From Selaginella moellendorffii (lineage: Eukaryota; Plantae; Lycopodiophyta), in NCBI RefSeq assembly GCF_000143415.4, contig NW_003314274.1, forward strand, positions 1,003,788 through 1,067,787: DNA of 64,000 nucleotides, given 5' to 3'. Both the position numbers and the translations under genes were made by a program. The notes under the pieces were generated by a model, which saw only the letters and a program-made list of their open reading frames with translations, was not told the DNA's origin and ran no database searches. Below are positions 39,970-51,010 of the stretch, one piece after another. Position 1 is the first letter of the stretch; every line of letters begins with the position of its first letter.

Positions 39970-40179
39970 CGTGGACGGCGCACCCGGGGATTTCGATCAG
40001 ATCCAAGCGCCTCGGCACTGGAATCGCGAGAAGAGAGTAATCCAGCAATCCATTCCAATCCAATCCAATCCAATCCAATCCTAGCGTCTTACCTGCAGTG
40101 CTCCTCCTCTTTCTCCCTGCTGAGGCAAGAAATTAGGGTTCTTGGTAAGAAATATTTTTACTCATTGCAAGCTCTCTCC

Positions 40180-41245
40180 ATGGCTCGTCTTGGAGCTGTG
40201 TTCTTCGATCTGGACGACACGCTGGTGCTCACTCACGCCGCGACCAAGATCGCCAACGACGCTGTCAAGGCCGTGCTCGCGAATCGAGCGCCGTCGTCCA
40301 ATGCCGACGAGGTGGTGAGCGCGTTTCTCGAGGGTTTCAGCTCCAGCCCCTGGGATCCAGTCGGTCAGGTAATTCTAGCTTGGCGATAGCTACATTGCTG
40401 TAGATTTTATTTGTGGATTCTCCAGGTCGATGTTACTGAGTGGCGAGCGCGAATCTGGCACGTTGCTCTCCAGAAGTGGAGCGTCCAAGACATAGAACTA
40501 GCCAGAGTGAGTCCATTGCTCCAAGTTGTTAGTTTACTACCTCCATCCTTTCTCCTTTTTCTAGGATTTGCAAGCTTGCTTCGACCGGGAGAGAATGCTT
40601 GCGTTCCAGTGGGCCGAAGGTGTCGAAGCGGTAAGGAGATTTCTAGTTTTTCTTCTCTTTCTCTCGTTATGACTTTCGAGCTTTAGAAGAGCAGCTTGTG
40701 CGGGAATTGCAAAATCAAGGCTTGAAAGTCGGGCTCATCACGAATGGACACACTGTGGTAAGCTTGTTCTTTCCTGGGAATTTTCACATGAAAAGAGTTC
40801 TTGCAAGGTCCAAAGAGCGAAGCTGGAAGCGTGCAAAGCTCAAGAACTCTTCAACGTTATTCTCGTGGGTGGAGGTGAAGCCCTTCGTTTTTCTCTCAAC
40901 TCGGTGATAACTTTCGTGTCAAAACATTCACAGAGGAGCCCCGAGAAAAGCCACACAAGGAGATTTTTCTCAAGGCTTGCGAGCTTGCCGGGTGTGATCC
41001 GCGAGAATCTGTCATGGTTGGAGACAATCTCTTGACAGATATTCAGGTGGGTGTGATAGACAGTACGCGTTTTGGTGCTCACTTTGATGCATCAGGGGGG
41101 TCTAAACGCTGGATTTCTCGCAACAATCTGGGTGAACTTACACGGCCATCCACCATCAAGCTCGATCCATCCGAGCTATACAATCTCTAGCATTGCGGAG
41201 CTACCTTGCGTGCTCAAGGAAATCCAGAGGAAGTACACCAATTAA
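40180..41245 (+). CDS. HAD-superfamily phosphatase (NANP/HDHD4-like), multi-exon
   Basis: Motif I FFDLDDTL, motif II LITNG, EKPHKEIF, and motif IV MVGDNLLTDIQGGLNAG. Confidence 0.9.
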
Positions 41246-41310
41246 TAACGGACCCATTTTCTTATATTCACGTATCAAACTTTCCATCGATTCCAGAGCT
41301 AAAATGACAG

Positions 41311-44300
41311 TTAATCATCGACCAAAATTTGGAGCTTGACTGGGCGATTGAGCAAGCTCTCGAACGCAGCCTCGAGAGCCGCGGCGTGCTCGTGCTGCTG
41401 GAACTTTCTAACGAACAGAGGAGACGATCCTATCGTCACGATTGCCGGCTGCGAGGTCTTTGAGATCGACACGAGTGATCCCTGCCAAAGAAGAACAAAC
41501 CAACAAGTGAATCAATGAATCATCTAAGTTCGCGGCAAGTACCTTTTGTGTCGCGAGAGCCAAGGTTGCTGGAGAGCTTTGAAGCACCGTGGACACTTGC
41601 TGCCATAGCTGCTCTAGATCTTCTCCTGGAGCTTGAGCGGGCTCCTTCGTCTTTGAATCTCTCGAGTTCTTCGTCTTGACTTTCGTAAAGCTCATGATCT
41701 TGTGCCAGAGATTTGTCCCTTGATCCGCATCCTCGTTTCCAGCTTCCTCACCACAGCTGCTGCTGCGCGCATTCTTCTCCAGAAGCTTGCCGGCCCTCCT
41801 GCGAATCCACTCCGGATAATCCCCGCTCTGGAACCATCCGGCGGAGGAGCCAAGCCGGGAAACAATGCATGCGACGAAGAGAAGTGACACGCTGTAGCGT
41901 TCACAAGCTCGGTGTGAAAGTTCTCGTAGTAGTCTTCCATGGCGAGTAGAGCTCTTGCGTTTACGTGGTTTGCCAGGTACTCCATCACTGCTCTCAACAA
42001 GGCTGCCTCGGTCTCTTGGAAGCCAGTTCTCAGCCGAAAGTCATCCAGAAGAACGAGCGAACTGCTTGTGACTTTGTCCAGGACCTTTCTTCCATCGGGC
42101 CAGTCGACGCTGTAGATTCCGTCCGCAATGGATAGTCGAGCTTCTTTAGCCGGTACAAAGCTGCCGATCTGTGCCAGCACCTGGATGAGAGCTACTTGTT
42201 GTAAGTAGCACGTCTTGCCACTGCCTCTGGGACCGGTGACGATGAGCAAGTCGGGCCTGTCTTCTACCTTCTTCGAACGACCGCGTCTCGGCTGGTAGCC
42301 CAGCGAGCACGAAGTCGGCTGGAAGTCTTTACGTATTTCAACCAGTGGATGTCTACCATCCACTATAGTGATTTGTCGTCCATCTGGTACTAGCTCTGGC
42401 TTGCTGAAATCCCTTGCTGCAGCGATTTCTGCATGAAACAAAACAAAGGTCGGCAATGGCGTCGTTTTGGAAAAGACATACCAGCGAAGTTGCAAAGGAC
42501 GTCCAGTGCGGCCAATGCACTACTCGTTTCTTGTAGCGTCAGCAGCGAGTCTGTAACTTTCTTTCTCAGACTCTCCACAAGGTCCGAACGCTCAGAGATT
42601 GTATCGCTCGCTTCGAAACCAATGTCAGCATCAGTTGCGGAACTCCTTGCCACCTTCAGCAGAAAATACAAACGTAAGGTTCAAGCTCTTAGGCAGCCAA
42701 ACGGTCAGTGTAGATCATTCAACATTCTATCAAAAGCCGTGACAAACCTGAATCTCTTCGGCCAGTTTCTCGGCAAAAGCTTGATGGCGAATAACAGCCG
42801 AAAAATAATCATTTCCTGGAAATTCTTCAAGCATCTGAGAAATCCTGGGTAGCATCAACAGCGAGTCTGCCAAAGCAATAAGCTCGTCCCTGGCAAGCAG
42901 CTTGATCAGTACATTAGAAAGATGTTGCAGAGACCCACCAAGAAAAGGTGGACTGTCGTGCAATACTTCCCGAAAGGTTGGCAATATCCACCATGGTCGA
43001 GAGACAGGAACGCAATGCTTCACGGACAGGACTATTTTTTAGGAGAACCTGAGGAGCTATTTAGTTGGATAAAAATCATAAGAGTCATTGCTACTGACCT
43101 CCACGGCATTTTGGCGTAAAAGAATTGATTCAAGACTTCTTAAAGGGTGTAACATCCATTGCCTCAGTAAACGAGTACCCATACTACTTTTAGTTTCGTC
43201 CATTGCCCAAAGAAGGGACGCGGTCTCAGTTCTTTTACCTTCGACTAGCTGGAAATCACAATGATGAACAAGAACAGAATATAGCTATTTAGTACCTCTA
43301 AGTAGCTTCTTACGCCTTCATCAAGACGAAGATAATCTTCGGTTTTATACAAAAGTAATTGCCGAAGGGAAAGCTCGTCAAGTGCAAACGCTTGTATTTG
43401 CTGAACGTATCTGAGCACGAAAGTGTCACATACACTCCACTATAAAACTCGAGATATAACTTAAGGACGCACCTTAGTAAGGCCCTGGCCGCAGTGTCTG
43501 TTAAAGACCACTGCTGAATTGCATCGACAGTTTTTTCTCCGATGTATGGAAGTAAAAGCTGCACAATAGAAAAATGTCTCATCGTTTACAAAACTATAAA
43601 GACCTTACAGTATCGTTTGAAATGGGAGAAAACTCTGACGAATCGCGTGCTACTACGCATACTTCTTCTAAATATGTTCTAATCGCCTGTGATGAGAAAA
43701 AAACAAAGATATATCATGAAGGCAAATTCAAGATCAACAAACTCACTTGCGAGTTAAATATGGCCTCTCTTGGTTTTAGTCGACCCAGCTCGTCCATCAA
43801 AGCGGCCAAACCTTCAGATTGTGTAGCACAAAAATCTCCTGCAATAAAGATGTAAGCAAGATACAAATATCATCATTTCAACCAACAGTACCGGTCGCTA
43901 AATCACAAAATGCTAGCCCCCAAGAAGAATCAGCGGACACGTTTACTGCGACCAAATAATTATTATGTGTCTCGTCTATAATCCCTTCATCGAGAAGCAT
44001 TCCTGGCGTCAAAACGCATATAGATTCTTGGACCTCATCACCAACCTATAACCATTTCCAAAACAGATATCAGCTTTGTATGCCTACAAAAAGCTTGCAC
44101 GTACCTTTACAACGCTTGTTCCTCTATCTAACAAAATTTTTGTATACACATAAAATTTACACGCTGGAAACCTCGTAACTGGAACTTCGATCTGCGTTTT
44201 GCATCATCATCGTAAATCAGAGACGGTAAACGTAGCAAGCAACGTACCTCGCCATCTTCGACTGTGCTTTGCCGAATCTTGCACGTTCTAGACAAAGAGA

Positions 44301-45983
44301 TTGCATCTTCAAAAAGAGCCTGTAGCGTCATGTGCATAAAGAAAGCTCTCAGAGTGCGGAATGTAATACCTCGTAAAAGTCACCAGCTTTTAAGAGGTGA
44401 ATAAAGCTTGGTCTCTTTCTTTTTGCCTCGACATAGTTCGCAAGAGCAGGGCTCAAAACTGTAGAATCCACAGATCCGGTATCCAGAAATGTCCTGCTCG
44501 ACTGCTGCTCCATCTCAACCCTGACCACTTCCACATCTTCTTCTAATACCATCTCTTCCTCCACTTCATCAACCGTGATTTCCAGTTCCAAATCCTCCCA
44601 AGGAACGTTAAGCCTATCCTCCTTTGTCAGCTCCTGTGTAGCTGATGAATCCGTCACTAACTCCCCTCTATCCATATCTTGGAAAAGCTTGGAGCTGGCG
44701 TATACTTCGTCAGCGGTGAAGGCCTTTTCTAAAAACACACTGGCCGGAAGCTGAAGTTCGGATACTATTGCCTCCAGCACCGAAGCAAGCATATTCACAT
44801 CTGCCATGGCGCGATGTGCACGCTCTGTGGAATGCAGACCATATGCTTCATGTAAAACAGAAAGTTTCAAAGACCGCCAGTTATATCCTGTAGTACGGTT
44901 ATGAGACGCGAGCAAATGGTATTTATAAACACGTACCGAATTTTTTCTTCGCTTCCCGAGCCAGAGGCATGGAATCTAAAAAGAGCCACCACTCAGGCAC
45001 TTGTATCCCGCAACTCTGAAACTCTTTAAGAAGAAATGGAACGTCAAACCTCTTCCCGTTGTGCGCGACAAGGATAACAGGCTCATCACCCTTTCGACGG
45101 CTTTCTACAAACTGAATAATGGACGGGCCAACCTCTTTCCAGCTGCGAGGGAGAAAGAAAGAAAAGAAGATATTAATGAAGTATGAACACAAAAGTAGTT
45201 TTCTTACCTGGGAACATGAGGCTTGTTCACCATCTGATTCGTTATTCCTGTAACAGCTGTTATAAGGTAAGGAACAGTCCGGCCGGGATTCACTAGAGCA
45301 GAAATGGTACTGCGATCACCCCCAGCAAGATCACGAGCTGCAAACTCTATAATGCGATCACCAGCAGCTCTAAAACCTGTTGTCTCGAGGTCGAAAACGA
45401 TGATCGTCATCTTTGGAGCAGGAATTTCTGAAGTAATGCTGCTGTCACTTGTGCTGCTAACCAAAATCTCTTCTTTGCTCCGTAGCAGTACCTCACTTTC
45501 CTGTGACGATGCCTCACTTTGCTCCAGGCCTGTTCGCTCCAAGACGCTCGAAGAAACCTTTAGCTCCATCCCATTGTCAGTTTGAAATCTTACGCTTTCT
45601 CCAAGATCTTTGGGGACTTTGGATGTGGAGGTGTCGATCTCGGAGCTCCCGATCTCTTCCTCCTCACGTAAAGCTTGATCGGGACTCGAGGATGCCCACG
45701 TTGAAAATCTAGAGCGCAAGAACTGGAGATTGATGTCTCGCAACGATGTTCTTGACAAGTAACGAGGATGAGGCTTGACGATAAAACACCTGAATGGCCC
45801 GAGCGATCAACTGGAAATCACTGGAAACGGCAACATTTACCTGGAAGAACAGCACGAACACGAAGAAGGAACAATTCGCCCGACGAAGAGCCTTGCTCCT
45901 GCGAATTCGTGCTTGAGGAGTCCATAGCACGCAATGCCGGACTCCATATTCTCCACGATCTTCCTGACGATGCCGGGGCTCAT
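41311..45983 (-). CDS. Organelle-targeted DEDDh (DPD1/DnaQ-like) exonuclease fused to bacterial-type MutS1 and a DnaX tau-C-like domain; one apparent 1-bp frameshift
   Basis: Transit peptide. ExoI VFDLETTG, ExoII VAHNGKRFDVPFL, ExoIII AHRAMADV. The same exon continues into MutS domain I (KAGDFYE|ALFEDA). Then LTPGMLLDE, WGLAFCDLATGDF, IVDGRHPLVE, TGPRGSGKT and AQIGSFVPA. Frameshift at the C4 run 41821-41824. The start could be 45947. Confidence 0.85.
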
Positions 45984-46294
45984 ATTCGCAGCTCACGGGC
46001 ACTCACCGGGGAGAATCGCTGCCCGCATTGCAATTCTTCCTCACATAAACCCTAAAACTCGCTCCAGCCCTAACCCACGCTATCCGCTGATGTGTCGTAG
46101 TCACAGTGACGTGGCCTGTCCACTGTGGACACCACGTCAGGTCTTCTTCCGCCTGTTCTTCTTCCACATTCTTTTATAGGACCTGGAAGGAAGGGAGCGC
46201 CCTGGAGCTCTGGCATAGGGTTTGTGGACGCGCGCGTGGATAGCGGCGTCTTGGCGCGCTTTAGAGGAGCGAAATCTTTCGGTGCGCAGCAGCT

Positions 46295-49200
46295 ATGGGG
46301 TGAGTGAGCTCAGACTAGAATTCCTGCATTGCGCATACACCGGGTGTGAGATTTTCGGCAAGATCAGGCTAGATCCAGGCGGTCTATGGCGGAAGAATTG
46401 GTCCTAGAATGTAGAGTTCAGTGCTTAGTTTTGCGTTATTGGAGACTTACCTATAAGAATGTGTGATGTGATGTTCTTAGGAGTCAAGAGATGCTACTCC
46501 AGAGGTACCGGCGTGACAGGAGGGAACTTCTCTCGTTCATTCTATCGGCTAGCATTTTCCGCAAGGTGGTCATGCCTCCCGGAGCTGTCACTCTTGACGA
46601 TATTGATCTAGAGCAAGTTAGCATTGATTATATCCTGGAATGCGCGAAGAAAGGTGAGGTTGAATGCTTTTGCTTTTCTAAAAGATAGCTTTTCTGATAG
46701 GTGGAATTCTCGAGCTTTCGGAGGCGATTAAAAAGTTTCACGATGATGCTCACATTCCAGCGGTGGTATGTTCTGGTGACGTGCTGCTAATTCACACTAA
46801 AAGTTTTCTGGTTCTACAGGCAAATTCTTTAAAGGGTGACATCTATTATCTCGTTACAGATCCGCAAGTTTCAGGTCCACCTCCTATGCGCTCGGTCCCT
46901 GCGCCTGCGGCATTGAGTCCACCAGTCGCAAAATCATCGCTATCCAAGTCTATATCTATACAGTCAACTCCATCGCAGCAAATCTCCGTTGATGACGAGA
47001 TTGATGATTTTGAAGATGACAATGAGGTGACGGGGGAGCTGTCAAGAAGAAAGCTAAATGACGCGAGTGACCTCGTTTTGAAACTTCCTCCCTTTGCTAC
47101 TGGTATGTCGTGTTACTTTTTAGATTTTACTACTAAAGCTCCATTTCTCAGGTTTATCCGAGGATGATTTGCGTGAGACTGCTTACGAAGTTCTTCTTGC
47201 ATCAGTTGGTGCGACAGCGTATGTTTCACAGTTGATATGTTATCTAAGCGTTAATACTGGCTGGAACAGGGGTCTTGTTGCACCGCCCAAGGAAAAGAAA
47301 GAGGAAAAAAAAATGAAGCTCGTGAGGAAGTTTACCAGGAGTAAGTCCGAAAAGCACAAACCCGAGCCAACAAAAGCACAGGGGCTTGCTGGTTTACTGG
47401 AACTAATGCGTACACAGCTGGAGGTTTTCTTTTGTTTTCATTTATTACAGCTACGGGCATTTTATTTTCTCTGTTTTCAGATTTCTGAGGCTTCCGACAA
47501 AAGGACAAGAGAAGCCTTGCTGCATTCTTCCGCCGGGAGGGTGGGCAAAAGAATGGACACTTTACTCATTCCACTTGAACTGCTTTGCGGTATTTCGAGA
47601 GCAGATTTCACGGAGAAGAAAGTTCATCTACGCTGGCAAAGAAGACAGGTAAATGTAAGTTAAACTTGTTTTTTAGCTGACATAGTTTGTTACAGCTAAA
47701 TCTTCTAGAGGAAGGCCTTGTCAATTTTCCTGCTGTAAGTTTAGAGCACAATGATCGCCAAGCTGGCGAGTTGAGAACATTAATAGCTAAGATAGAGGAA
47801 GCAGAGGTAAAAAAAAAAGGGCTCGTTTTTATGTCTGAAAGCTGTTTCTTTGTTGCTTGTAGACACTACCATCCCCCGCGGGTCCAGCACAACATGCCGA
47901 GGCTTTGAAAGCGTTAAGAGGTGTTTCATTAGCGTTGGCAGAAAGAGCTAGCAGAGGGGATCAGATTGGGGAAGTTTGTCATTGGGCTGATGGCTATCAT
48001 CTAAACGTTCGAATCTACGAAAGGTTGCTCAGCAGTACGTTTGATATTCTGGATGAAGGACAGCTAATCGAGGTAATTTCACAGGCTCTAGTTGAAATTA
48101 TTACGATATGGTTTTGCAGGAGGCAGACGAGATCCTTGAGCTTCTCAAATCTACATGGAAGATATTAGGAATCACTCAAACTGTGCATAACACCTGTTAT
48201 ACATGGGTCCTTTTCCGTCAGGTAACCATTTTTTCCACATTGTACGTCAACTTGGATACTACATGTGTGTATATTTAGTTTGTCATCACTGATGAAGTCT
48301 CGCTTTTACAACATGCTGCACAACAAATGAAAAGAATAGCATCTGATAGTCAACGCAGCGCACAAGAAAGAGCGTATATGAAGAGCTTGCGGTCTACCAT
48401 TGTTTTGAATGGCACGTCCCAAGATCTTTCTTTTGTTCAATCTATAGTCGAGCCTATCAAGACTTGGGTAGAGAAGCGGCTTAACGATTACCACCTGCAT
48501 TTTTCCGAGGTACTTACATGACATTTTCTTTGTTATAGCCATGACATTTTGATGCAGGACGCAGCGAAAATGGAACAGTTTATTACGTTGGTTATGATCG
48601 CTGGAAGGTTAATAGCAGAAGAGGACGAAAAGACCGAAGTAAGCGTTTGATAGAGATAAATTCGGAGGTTTGATTTTTCTTTGTTCAGATAACGAGAATG
48701 ACGTCGGCAGCAAATCAAGCAGCTATTGCTAAACAGGCAGAGGAGTATATTTGGTCCTCAGTAAAACTCGCTTATGAGAGGGTATGTCATGATTTATTCC
48801 TCCAGGTGATACTACTTACAGTTTTGATAGGCTTTGGAAGGTGTGGATGCTAAATCTGAAGCAGAGCACGATCATCCTCTGGCTTTGCTCGCGGAAGATG
48901 TGGAAGCTCTTGCCAGGAAAGATGCTTCAACCTTTGCCCCCATTTTGTCTCGCTGGCAACCGCAAGCCAAAGCTATCACTGGCTCTCTCTTGCATACGCT
49001 GTACTACAAAGAACTGGTACCTGATTTGGTTTTCATTCATCTTTCATTTCTAAGTAACCTGTTTCTACCTAGAAACCATTTCTAGACGGTGTATCTCACT
49101 TGACAGATGACGTTGCGTCTGTTCTTCCTGCTGCTGATAGCCTGGATCGCTACTTGACCGAACTTGTTGGAGCTGTTGATGATGGTAACAACGTTTATCG

Positions 49201-51010
49201 CCAGCAAATGACTTTTTACGAGGTGAGTAGACAACCCTTTCTAATTTGCGATGCGGATAACTTTTGTTGTTCGAAGGTGGAAAATCTGTCAGCAACTCTT
49301 ATCATGCGTTGGGTAAACGCTCAACTGAGCAGATTGTCTGACTGGGTTGATCGTACTGTTCGTCAAGAGGTACAAACATTGTATTTTTTATAATCATGAC
49401 ATGTAGCCTGTAGAAATGGGAGCCCTTGTCCATGCAAAAGCGGCAGGGGGAATCAGTCGTTGAGGTTTTTCGCATTATAGACGAGGTTTGTTGTCGTTGT
49501 TTTCAATTCTGCTTCTAACCTTTTCAGTGCAGACCGTTGAGCAATTTTTTGGTTTGAAGCTTCCAATGAAAATTTCTCTTTTGAAAGGTCTAACAAACGG
49601 CTTAGACAATGCACTACAGTTGTACTGCAATAAGATTGTCGGTCAGCTAGGTACGTGGATATTGCTTGTATGTTTCTATTTATTTCTCTCAATGCAGGCA
49701 CCAAAGCTGATTTAATTCCTCCTCCACCAAGTTTGACACGTTATGGTAAAGACACTTCTTTGAAAATGTTTTCGAAAAAGAGGTTCGTGGATCCTAGCCT
49801 ACCGGATGATAGGAGGGGGGACGATATTAGACTTCTCACAACGTCCAGGCTATGTGTTCGTCTTAATTCCATTTACGTGAGTTTGTTTCATGAACTAATG
49901 GTTCCCATGGACTGAGTATTTTTACCTTTGTAGTATATACTCAATCAAGTGGACGTTCTAGAAGACAACATCCGAGATCGATGGCGTTCTGGAAAATCAA
50001 CTATAAAACCAAAAACTGAGGCAAATGGAAGTGAGTATATTTATCATGTATTTCCCCGTTACTTACATATTTGCAGGAAACGGAGATGTAAGAGTGAGGC
50101 CTCTTGACGAAATCTCGTCTTCATTTGATGGTTCTCGAAAGGCAGCAAATGCAGCAATTGACAAGATATGTGAATTCACAGGTATGAATTCTCTGTGCTT
50201 TTTTCCAACCAGAGACTTAACGCTCTTTTAGGAACAAAATTGATTTTCTGGGATATGCGAGACCCATTCATCGATGGGTTGTATAAAGGAGGCGTTACGG
50301 AGGCACGGATGGAACAAGTTGTTAACAACCTTGATCCCGTAAGAACGTTCAAACGTGCTCCACTGCGCGGTTTTTAACTCGATCTTAATATTTCCAGATT
50401 CTGGGACAAATTGTTGAAATGGTGGTAGAAGCGTTGAGAGACAGACTTGTGTTGGGCCTTTTGCAAGCTGCAATCGTAAGAAACTCCTACGAGGTTTTGA
50501 TTCTCACCACAATGGCTTTGCAGGAAGGTCTTATCCGTGTGCTTCTTGATGGTGGCCCTTCGCGTGCATTTTCCCATAATGACGTGGATATGCTGGAGCA
50601 CGATCTTAGAGTGTTGAAGGTTTGTAGGATTCACCGTGTCCTCGCTCATGCAAGCCTTGTGATGTTTCTGCTAGAATTTCTTCATTGCCGAAGGGGAAGG
50701 TCTTCAGAGGGGAGTTGTCGAAAATGCTGCTGCCCCTGCACAACAGATTATCGAGCTATATCGACTTGAGGTGCACCTCGTTTTTGCTCATGTCGTGATC
50801 AAATTTGTTGCGTTGCGGCAGACATATGTGTTAATCGAGAACTTTCGTAAAGCAAGCGATCGGATGGCAAGCGGTACCAGCGTCCAGCGGACGGGGATTC
50901 GAGCTGCAAGCGACGCAGACACACTGCTTAGAATACTTTGCCACCGCATGGACGACGACGCCTCACAGTTTCTCAAGAGACAGTACAAGTTGCCAAAGTC
51001 AACGGCTTGA
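46295..51010 (+). CDS. PATROL1: PATROL1 / Munc13-homology (DUF810) protein, multi-exon
   Basis: LLQRYRRDRRELLSFILSASIFRKVVMPPGAVTLDDIDLEQVSIDY; LRETAYEVLLAS; EVCHWADGYHLN; VLLDGGPSRAF; DADTLLRILCHRMDDDASQFLKRQYKLPKS. Confidence 0.93.

Follow-up and report, generated by a model that had tools for sequence, protein, structure and literature searches.

Introduction

Can a single polypeptide that carries both a DPD1-type exonuclease and a MutS1-type mismatch sensor act as a complete mismatch-processing enzyme? The question is raised by a gene of the lycophyte Selaginella moellendorffii (LOC9645946 / SELMODRAFT_440920) in a 64,000-nucleotide (nt) stretch of contig NW_003314274.1 (positions 1,003,788 to 1,067,787 of the forward strand; hereafter the window, whose numbering is used throughout). 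A first-pass annotation, made from the letters alone, had described an exonuclease fused to a bacterial-type MutS1 and had proposed a single-chain organellar mismatch-processing enzyme, representing a second, independent MutS-nuclease fusion. The fusion is real and is made as one mRNA, and the window gene is one of two S. moellendorffii alleles of the published plant DPD1-MutS1 gene. In its canonical sense, however, the proposed enzyme is not supported for this copy, since the clamp and the ATP-binding cassette (ABC) signature of the MutS part are deleted and both the Walker B Glu and the Thr-His pair are replaced.

The class was described by Sloan et al. 2024 (Plant Cell 37:koae277, PMC12292046), who reported an N-terminal DPD1 fused to a cyanobacterial-like MutS1 in many Viridiplantae, with the five exonuclease catalytic residues conserved; plant MutS1 proteins were stated to retain all domains together with Walker A, Walker B and the signature. 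According to the same study, MutS1 was lost in seed plants and DPD1 was kept, MutL was lost in Viridiplantae, and DPD1-RecG fusions occur in some green algae; DPD1 was hypothesized to supply the excision step or to trim invading strands. The literature therefore already contains the architecture, its distribution over taxa and both the excision and the recombination hypothesis, and the fusion is neither a discovery nor by itself the opening of a new question. Selaginella is absent from the main text of PMC12292046, and the decay of its copy, a third domain and corrections to database models are modest additions to this known class.

Exonuclease and MutS1 are encoded by one spliced transcript

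The open reading frame (ORF) pieces, motifs and coordinates of the first-pass annotation were confirmed, including the location of the ExoIII motif of the exonuclease and the Phe-X-Glu motif of MutS domain I in one exon (exon 4, Table 1), the last codon of which is the Glu codon of GDFYE. The stretch was matched by 20 public runs with a word share of 0.3-0.67, as expected for exons only. Transcript contigs from four runs of four studies (runs X1, X2, X5 and X12) were aligned to the window with 16 gaps. Each gap, once ambiguity in the cut position was taken into account, corresponds to a GT-AG intron on the minus strand (47-94 nt), and the contigs therefore represent spliced RNA. The spliced frame is continuous; the contig joint between exons 1 and 2 fell at 45787|45839, and the borders were then set to canonical splice sites. 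The X12 contig (4797 nt) and the X5 contig (3629 nt) each start in exon 1, cross the junction exon as well as the exonuclease exons, and extend into exon 16, which encodes the MutS ATPase. The junction is thus kept in spliced transcripts. The ATG at 45983 is the first in-frame ATG that follows an upstream stop, and the transcript contigs start at 46008-46017.

The spliced translation of the window as it stands is identical, letter for letter, to RefSeq XP_024530404.1 (isoform X1, 1147 amino acids (aa)), and the predicted product has 1254 aa if the RNA reading of the A-run at 41832-33, AAA, is used. Other database products of the gene are EFJ29104.1 (1208 aa) and RefSeq isoform X2 (973 aa). When the domain V exon was compared by HMMER with 1.8 billion representatives, the 1208-aa protein was recovered at 99% identity together with a series of long plant proteins. 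The sister allele, SELMODRAFT_420926 / XP_002981449.1 (1254 aa), lies on a different scaffold (GL377613.1) and is assigned to the second haplotype because its neighbouring genes (UNC13/PATROL1-like, HAD-like hydrolase and V-ATPase E) are the same as those of the window gene.

The exonuclease part is of the DPD1 type

As had been read from the letters, all five DEDDh residues are intact (D181 and E183 in ExoI, D275 in ExoII, H335 and D340 in ExoIII), and their spacing is within one residue of that in Physcomitrium patens (D276/E278/D370/H431/D436). Pfam searches of the annotated product matched RNase_T (E 5e-22) and MutS_III (E 2e-33) as well as MutS_I, II and V, and the six-frame ORF pieces matched RNase_T and MutS_II, III and V; the E-values of RNase_T and MutS_III exclude a chance match. 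No MutS_IV match was obtained on the annotated product.

The exonuclease domain is matched best by angiosperm sequences annotated as "exonuclease DPD1, chloroplastic/mitochondrial" (E 6e-46 to 1e-36, 41-52% identity), whereas bacterial DnaQ-like proteins match it only at E 1e-20 or worse. In a quick maximum-likelihood tree built from 56 domains, with support from the Shimodaira-Hasegawa-like approximate likelihood ratio test (SH-aLRT) rather than bootstrap and with a limited outgroup, the Selaginella exonuclease falls in a streptophyte group with seed-plant DPD1 (SH-aLRT 91). Within this group, stand-alone seed-plant DPD1 (19 rows, SH-aLRT 91) is placed beside the fused copies of non-seed plants and two stand-alone Spirogloea proteins. 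The exonuclease part is accordingly grouped with DPD1, as the first-pass annotation had expected, and its suggestion that stand-alone DPD1 arose by loss of the MutS part is compatible with the topology, which is what orthology and a fission in the line of seed plants would give. From these comparisons, a DPD1-type DEDDh 3'-5' exonuclease is predicted. P0189 and P0191 (eukprot SM000082S22842 and SM000017S02771), apparently of streptophyte algal origin, are stand-alone DPD1-like proteins of about 320 aa that group with the fused land-plant clade, not with seed-plant DPD1, and could represent an independent fission or split gene models. At the N-terminus of the Selaginella protein, the first 80 aa contain 12 R/K, 4 D/E and 13 S/T, a composition weakly suggestive of a transit peptide.

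The MutS part keeps its fold and loses its clamp and ATPase elements

The best bacterial match of the MutS part is cyanobacterial (Nodularia MutS, E 8e-86). The Phe-X-Glu wedge is intact (F481, E483), again as first annotated, and Walker A keeps the GxxxxGK[ST] pattern with the conserved Asn replaced by Arg. Based on an AlphaFold2 (AF2) model of residues 440-1160 (pLDDT, the predicted local distance difference test score, 84; predicted template modelling score 0.87), the MutS fold is kept: the model aligns with E. coli MutS (3zlj_A) over 640 residues with a Z of 38.7 and a root-mean-square deviation (rmsd) of 3.7 A.

Deletions and substitutions were read from alignments with Riccia, Diphasiastrum, ferns and bacteria (Table 1). 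The tips of the lever and the whole clamp domain IV are missing, and the lever helices are joined directly in the AF2 model. Pfam detects domain I in part, domains II and III, and domain V over profile positions 1-46 of 188 only. The full MutS1 domain set I-V is therefore not present, domain IV being without Pfam match and deleted in both the alignments and the model. Nor is the ABC ATPase site complete, since the trans-acting signature is deleted, Walker B reads DD and Thr-His has become Met-Glu; in domain V, GRGT is also replaced by RLRT. A HMMER alignment to human MSH3 places a 16-residue gap exactly at the signature motif. Loss of ATPase turnover is what these changes would predict for the Selaginella MutS part.

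The extent of decay was compared over 132 columns with an invariance of at least 92% among 39 bacterial MutS proteins. The Selaginella copy keeps 70 of them (21 are deleted), the Adiantum fern copy and two Logan proteins keep 86-94, Riccia keeps 117, and a chlorophyte-like protein (P0117) keeps 118. Riccia retains all canonical motifs including the clamp, and the chlorophyte copies likewise retain all canonical motifs. Because Diphasiastrum, the other lycophyte, keeps the clamp, the signature and the Walker B DE, the decay in Selaginella is specific to the Selaginella line. In Adiantum (P0012), Ceratopteris (P0022/P0159) and Logan proteins (P0006, P0174), the Walker B Glu is lost (DG or DD) together with parts of the signature and of GRGT; decay of the ATPase as such is therefore not confined to Selaginella. 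A full-length protein search recovered no other Selaginella species, yielding three fusion clusters only, with bacterial MutS swamping the word filter.

A third module at the C-terminus

The last ~85 residues are conserved in every land-plant copy retrieved, with 27 invariant columns among eight sequences, and are absent from the ~140 bacterial and chlorophyte MutS proteins retrieved. Pfam PF23007 (STICHEL DnaA_N-like) matches all eight land-plant orthologues, the best score being 37 bits against a cutoff of 27; copies with the domain include P0004, P0006, P0012, P0159, P0172 and P0174. A model of the domain (pLDDT 76) has the alpha-alpha-beta-beta-alpha-alpha-beta fold of DnaA domain I (4tps_B; template modelling (TM) score 0.74, rmsd 2.9 A) and also resembles the C-terminus of a cyanobacterial DnaX from the ESM Atlas (TM score 0.73, rmsd 2.0 A, 86 residues). 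A Foldseek search against the PDB reached an E of about 6e-3 only, and a profile of the domain gave no matches among PDB sequences. Language-model features agree with the DnaX-C/DnaA-N-like assignment, which combines this fold with a Pfam score above the gathering threshold. The domain shares its fold with the C-terminal DnaA_N-like domain of STICHEL and DnaX (PF23007, PF20964); there it is joined to a clamp-loader ATPase and here to MutS. It is mentioned nowhere in the text of PMC12292046.

Frameshift site, intron retention and constraint between haplotypes

The window carries AA at the A-run, and this reading truncates RefSeq isoform X1 at 1147 aa through a 1-nt gap. The other haplotype and all four RNA contig sets read AAA, with an extra A after 41831. 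In the X1, X2 and X5 contigs, AAA occurs together with the window haplotype's base at 41903, 72 nt away, and the AAA frame is also the one followed by an independent transcript fragment (P0069) that reads through. The AA version was found in no indexed run with a 60-base query centred on the A-run, a weak search that sampled only two words. AA is probably an assembly error rather than a real null allele. EFJ29104.1 bridges the A-run with an intron that is found in no RNA contig. Database models thus require two corrections, one RefSeq isoform being truncated and one GenBank model containing an invented intron.

Intron 4 is spliced out in the X5 and X12 contigs and retained in the X1 and X2 contigs. 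Its retention leads to a stop after ...GDFYEVLHSAL and leaves a 489-aa ORF in which the exonuclease and the linker are followed by only ~30 residues from the start of MutS domain I, the rest of MutS being absent. Because the X1 contigs also retain intron 6, part of this signal comes from unprocessed RNA. The premature stop lies far upstream of later junctions, and the retained-intron transcript may simply be degraded.

Between the two haplotypes there are 29 substitutions in exons (19 nonsynonymous, 10 synonymous), 15 substitutions in 909 nt of intron, and a difference in the length of the A-run. The ratio of nonsynonymous to synonymous substitution rates (dN/dS) is 0.57 for the whole gene (P = 0.11) and 0.39 for the MutS part (nine nonsynonymous, seven synonymous; P = 0.057), the latter hinting at residual constraint. 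It is about 0.3 for the exonuclease and likewise for the C-terminal region (aa 1126-1254), each with one substitution of either kind, and at or above 1 (1.48) for the N-terminal region (five nonsynonymous, one synonymous). For the linker (three nonsynonymous, none synonymous) it is not defined. The counts are too few to choose between weak constraint and drift.

Gene structure and neighbouring genes

Table 1. Features of the DPD1-MutS1 gene in window coordinates
Feature	Position	Strand	Remarks
DPD1-MutS1 CDS (coding sequence)	45983 to 41311	minus	17 exons
Exon 1	45841..46008	minus	short 5' untranslated region (UTR), start codon 45983-45981, first 48 codons of putative presequence
Exon 2	45208..45789	minus	poorly conserved Ser/Glu-rich N-terminal region and start of DEDDh domain; Pfam RNase_T
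ExoI DLETTG	45392-45375	minus	exon 2
Exon 3	44937..45142	minus	carries ExoII
ExoII AHNGKRFD	45066-45043	minus	exon 3
Exon 4 (junction exon)	44370..44887	minus	ExoIII, acidic linker (31% D/E), start of MutS domain I to GDFYE
ExoIII AHRAMAD	44819-44799	minus	exon 4
GDFYE (Phe-X-Glu)	44384-44370	minus	exon 4
Intron 4	44320..44369	minus	50 nt
Exons 5-15	42482..44319	minus	remainder of MutS domain I, then domains II and III
PMAGIP replaced by VPVTRFP	44185-44165	minus	MutS domain I, from alignments
Deletion of ~115 residues	between codons at 42774 and 42603	minus	lever tips and whole clamp domain IV, from alignments
Exon 16	41543..42428	minus	MutS domain V and spacer
P-loop GPRGSGKT	42234-42211	minus	exon 16
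Deletion of 16 residues (G-x-S-T-F-x-x-E-M signature)	between 42123 and 42091	minus	exon 16
Walker B LVLLDD	42057-42040	minus	DE to DD
Thr-His (T-H) replaced by M-E	41943-41923	minus	exon 16
A-run	41832..41833		AA in window; AA shifts frame, stop at 41694-41692
Helix-turn-helix remnant	41821-41771	minus	exon 16
DnaX-C/DnaA-N-like domain (PF23007)	41314..41623	minus	Pfam and fold matches
Intron 16	41482-41542	minus	splits the C-terminal domain
Stop codon (AAA frame)	41313-41311	minus	directly after C-terminal domain

The gene converges with a HAD-like hydrolase gene on the plus strand (40142-41300), and transcript contigs cross between the two, so that their 3' UTRs overlap or abut. A contig joint at 41245|41296 ("skips 50") was considered as an intron and rejected, being a small 3' UTR indel between the haplotypes. 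On the other side, a UNC13/PATROL1-like gene on the plus strand (46491-51010) is divergent from DPD1-MutS1, with ~480 bp between the 5' ends, and the two genes may share a promoter region.

Possible mode of action and alternative explanations

Based on the states of the motifs, the models and the transcripts, a working model is proposed in which an organelle-directed DPD1 exonuclease is carried on a clamp-less MutS scaffold with an end domain for docking; we regard this model as moderately probable. A single nuclear mRNA would give a protein composed of a presumed organelle presequence, the DPD1-type exonuclease, the acidic linker, the MutS1 body and the DnaX-C/DnaA-N-like end domain. The MutS body may dimerize and serve as a DNA-distortion or heteroduplex-binding scaffold, wedging via Phe-X-Glu; it could still bind nucleotide, but it would not run an ATP-driven sliding-clamp cycle. 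This scaffold could bring the tethered exonuclease to 3' ends close by in plastid and/or mitochondrial DNA, where recombination intermediates, nicked DNA and DNA under degradation are candidate substrates. The end domain may dock the protein to itself or to a partner. The outcome would be other than canonical MutS-MutL-type mismatch repair, and canonical ATP-driven mismatch signalling is unlikely in S. moellendorffii. Several points weigh against this model. Three acidic residues occur in the first 26 N-terminal positions, which is atypical for transit peptides, and canonical MutS proteins make up the alignment on which the AF2 model of the MutS part leans. Asp can sometimes stand in for the Walker B Glu with low activity, so that we infer, rather than observe, the absence of turnover. 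The whole-gene dN/dS is indistinguishable from neutral drift, and the MutS body might be a decaying relic.

If the MutS part were a functionless relic in a gene heading towards the stand-alone DPD1 that seed plants have, the exonuclease alone, perhaps in the form of the 489-aa product, would matter. Selaginella is the most decayed among the sampled copies, its whole-gene dN/dS is not significantly below 1, eight nonsynonymous changes against one synonymous change have accumulated in the N-terminus and linker together, two of the four runs have contigs that retain intron 4, the window haplotype has a frameshift in the assembly, and seed plants kept DPD1 and lost MutS1 (PMC12292046). In contrast, ~770 codons of the MutS and C-terminal parts are open in both haplotypes across 13 exons, the C-terminal domain is in frame and above the Pfam cutoff, and the MutS part has the lower dN/dS of 0.39. 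The frameshift occurs in no RNA contig, including the three that carry the window haplotype's base 72 nt away, and the retained-intron transcript may be no more than RNA awaiting degradation, the retention of intron 6 in X1 being a sign of unprocessed RNA. We consider such a relic unlikely. A fully working single-chain mismatch-excision enzyme, in which MutS1 senses a replication error, signals with ATP and has DPD1 chew back the error strand, is less probable still. The retained Phe-X-Glu, P-loop and MutS fold would suit it, the hypothesis was put forward for the family in PMC12292046, and it may hold elsewhere, since Riccia and chlorophyte copies have all canonical motifs. For Selaginella, however, it has to contend with the deleted clamp and signature and with the replacements of the Walker B Glu by Asp, GRGT by RLRT and Thr-His by Met-Glu. 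Furthermore, a 3'-5' exonuclease needs a free 3' end, a nicking partner is not evident, and MutL was lost in Viridiplantae (PMC12292046). An annotation or assembly artefact that joined two neighbouring genes is extremely improbable. No support for it was found, although contigs alone are no formal proof of a single molecule; both motifs lie in one exon in a continuous frame, and the second haplotype, Riccia, ferns, a moss-like Logan protein and chlorophytes share the architecture. A gene-model artefact, which the first-pass annotation had also dismissed, was rejected on the basis of the single spliced contigs across the junction and the identity of the model with RefSeq isoform X1.

Relation to known systems and implications

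With its cyanobacterial-type MutS1 preceded by a DPD1 domain in the same ORF and transcript, the gene belongs among the Viridiplantae DPD1-MutS1 fusions. Like the reference from Physcomitrium patens, the Selaginella protein has an N-terminal DEDDh domain with five residues, a Phe-X-Glu motif, a long N-terminal extension and a non-seed-plant host. The Riccia, fern and Logan orthologues align over the full length. Unlike plant MutS1 as described in PMC12292046, it is without domain IV and signature and has Asp for the Walker B Glu; it is also much shorter (1254 aa against 1556-1864 aa). Ceratopteris richardii KAH7291802.1 (P0159, 1592 aa) carries the DPD1 domain with 300 bits to the domain profile, and the DPD1 part queried as missing for Ceratopteris in PMC12292046 looks like a matter of gene-model choice, not a true truncation. 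Seed-plant DPD1, such as Arabidopsis DPD1 (AT5G26940), has the same DEDDh domain and is a stand-alone protein of ~315-340 aa, in contrast to the linker, MutS1 and end domain present here. DPD1-RecG fusions (PMC12292046) likewise place a DPD1-like exonuclease at the N-terminus of an organellar DNA-binding motor, the partner being a helicase instead of MutS.

As in plant MSH1, a MutS-type sensor and a nuclease are combined in one polypeptide, which is organelle-directed in MSH1 and presumably so here. On the other hand, the MutS subfamily differs, the MSH1 nuclease is a C-terminal GIY-YIG endonuclease rather than an N-terminal 3'-5' exonuclease, and MSH1 keeps domains I-V. Nuclease activation and cleavage by Arabidopsis MSH1 require ATP hydrolysis (bioRxiv 10.64898/2026.06.11.731605), which, together with the dismantled ATPase site, argues against an MSH1-like coupled mechanism in the Selaginella copy. 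Compared with bacterial MutS1 (E. coli 3zlj/1e3m, Taq 1ewq and Nodularia), the overall fold, Phe-X-Glu and P-loop are shared; clamp and signature are absent, Walker B and Thr-His are altered, and a DnaX-C-like domain replaces the C-terminal tetramerization region.

Land-plant DPD1-MutS1 may then be a three-module protein in which the end domain may link both the epsilon-like exonuclease and the mismatch sensor to a partner in the replisome or nucleoid. On this view, the Selaginella protein would be a natural variant that lacks the clamp and has its ATPase site dismantled, its MutS body being kept for something other than ATP-driven signalling, and intron 4 retention could be a living intermediate of the fission behind seed-plant DPD1. 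Taken jointly, these propositions are speculative, and we hold them as a tentative possibility. The conserved third domain belongs in any functional study of the family, for example in Physcomitrium. The Selaginella copy is a natural dissection of the protein, having lost both clamp and composite ATPase site and retained the exonuclease, the Phe-X-Glu wedge and the C-terminal domain, and it bears on the question raised in PMC12292046 of what role DPD1-MutS1 plays beside MSH1 in non-seed plants.

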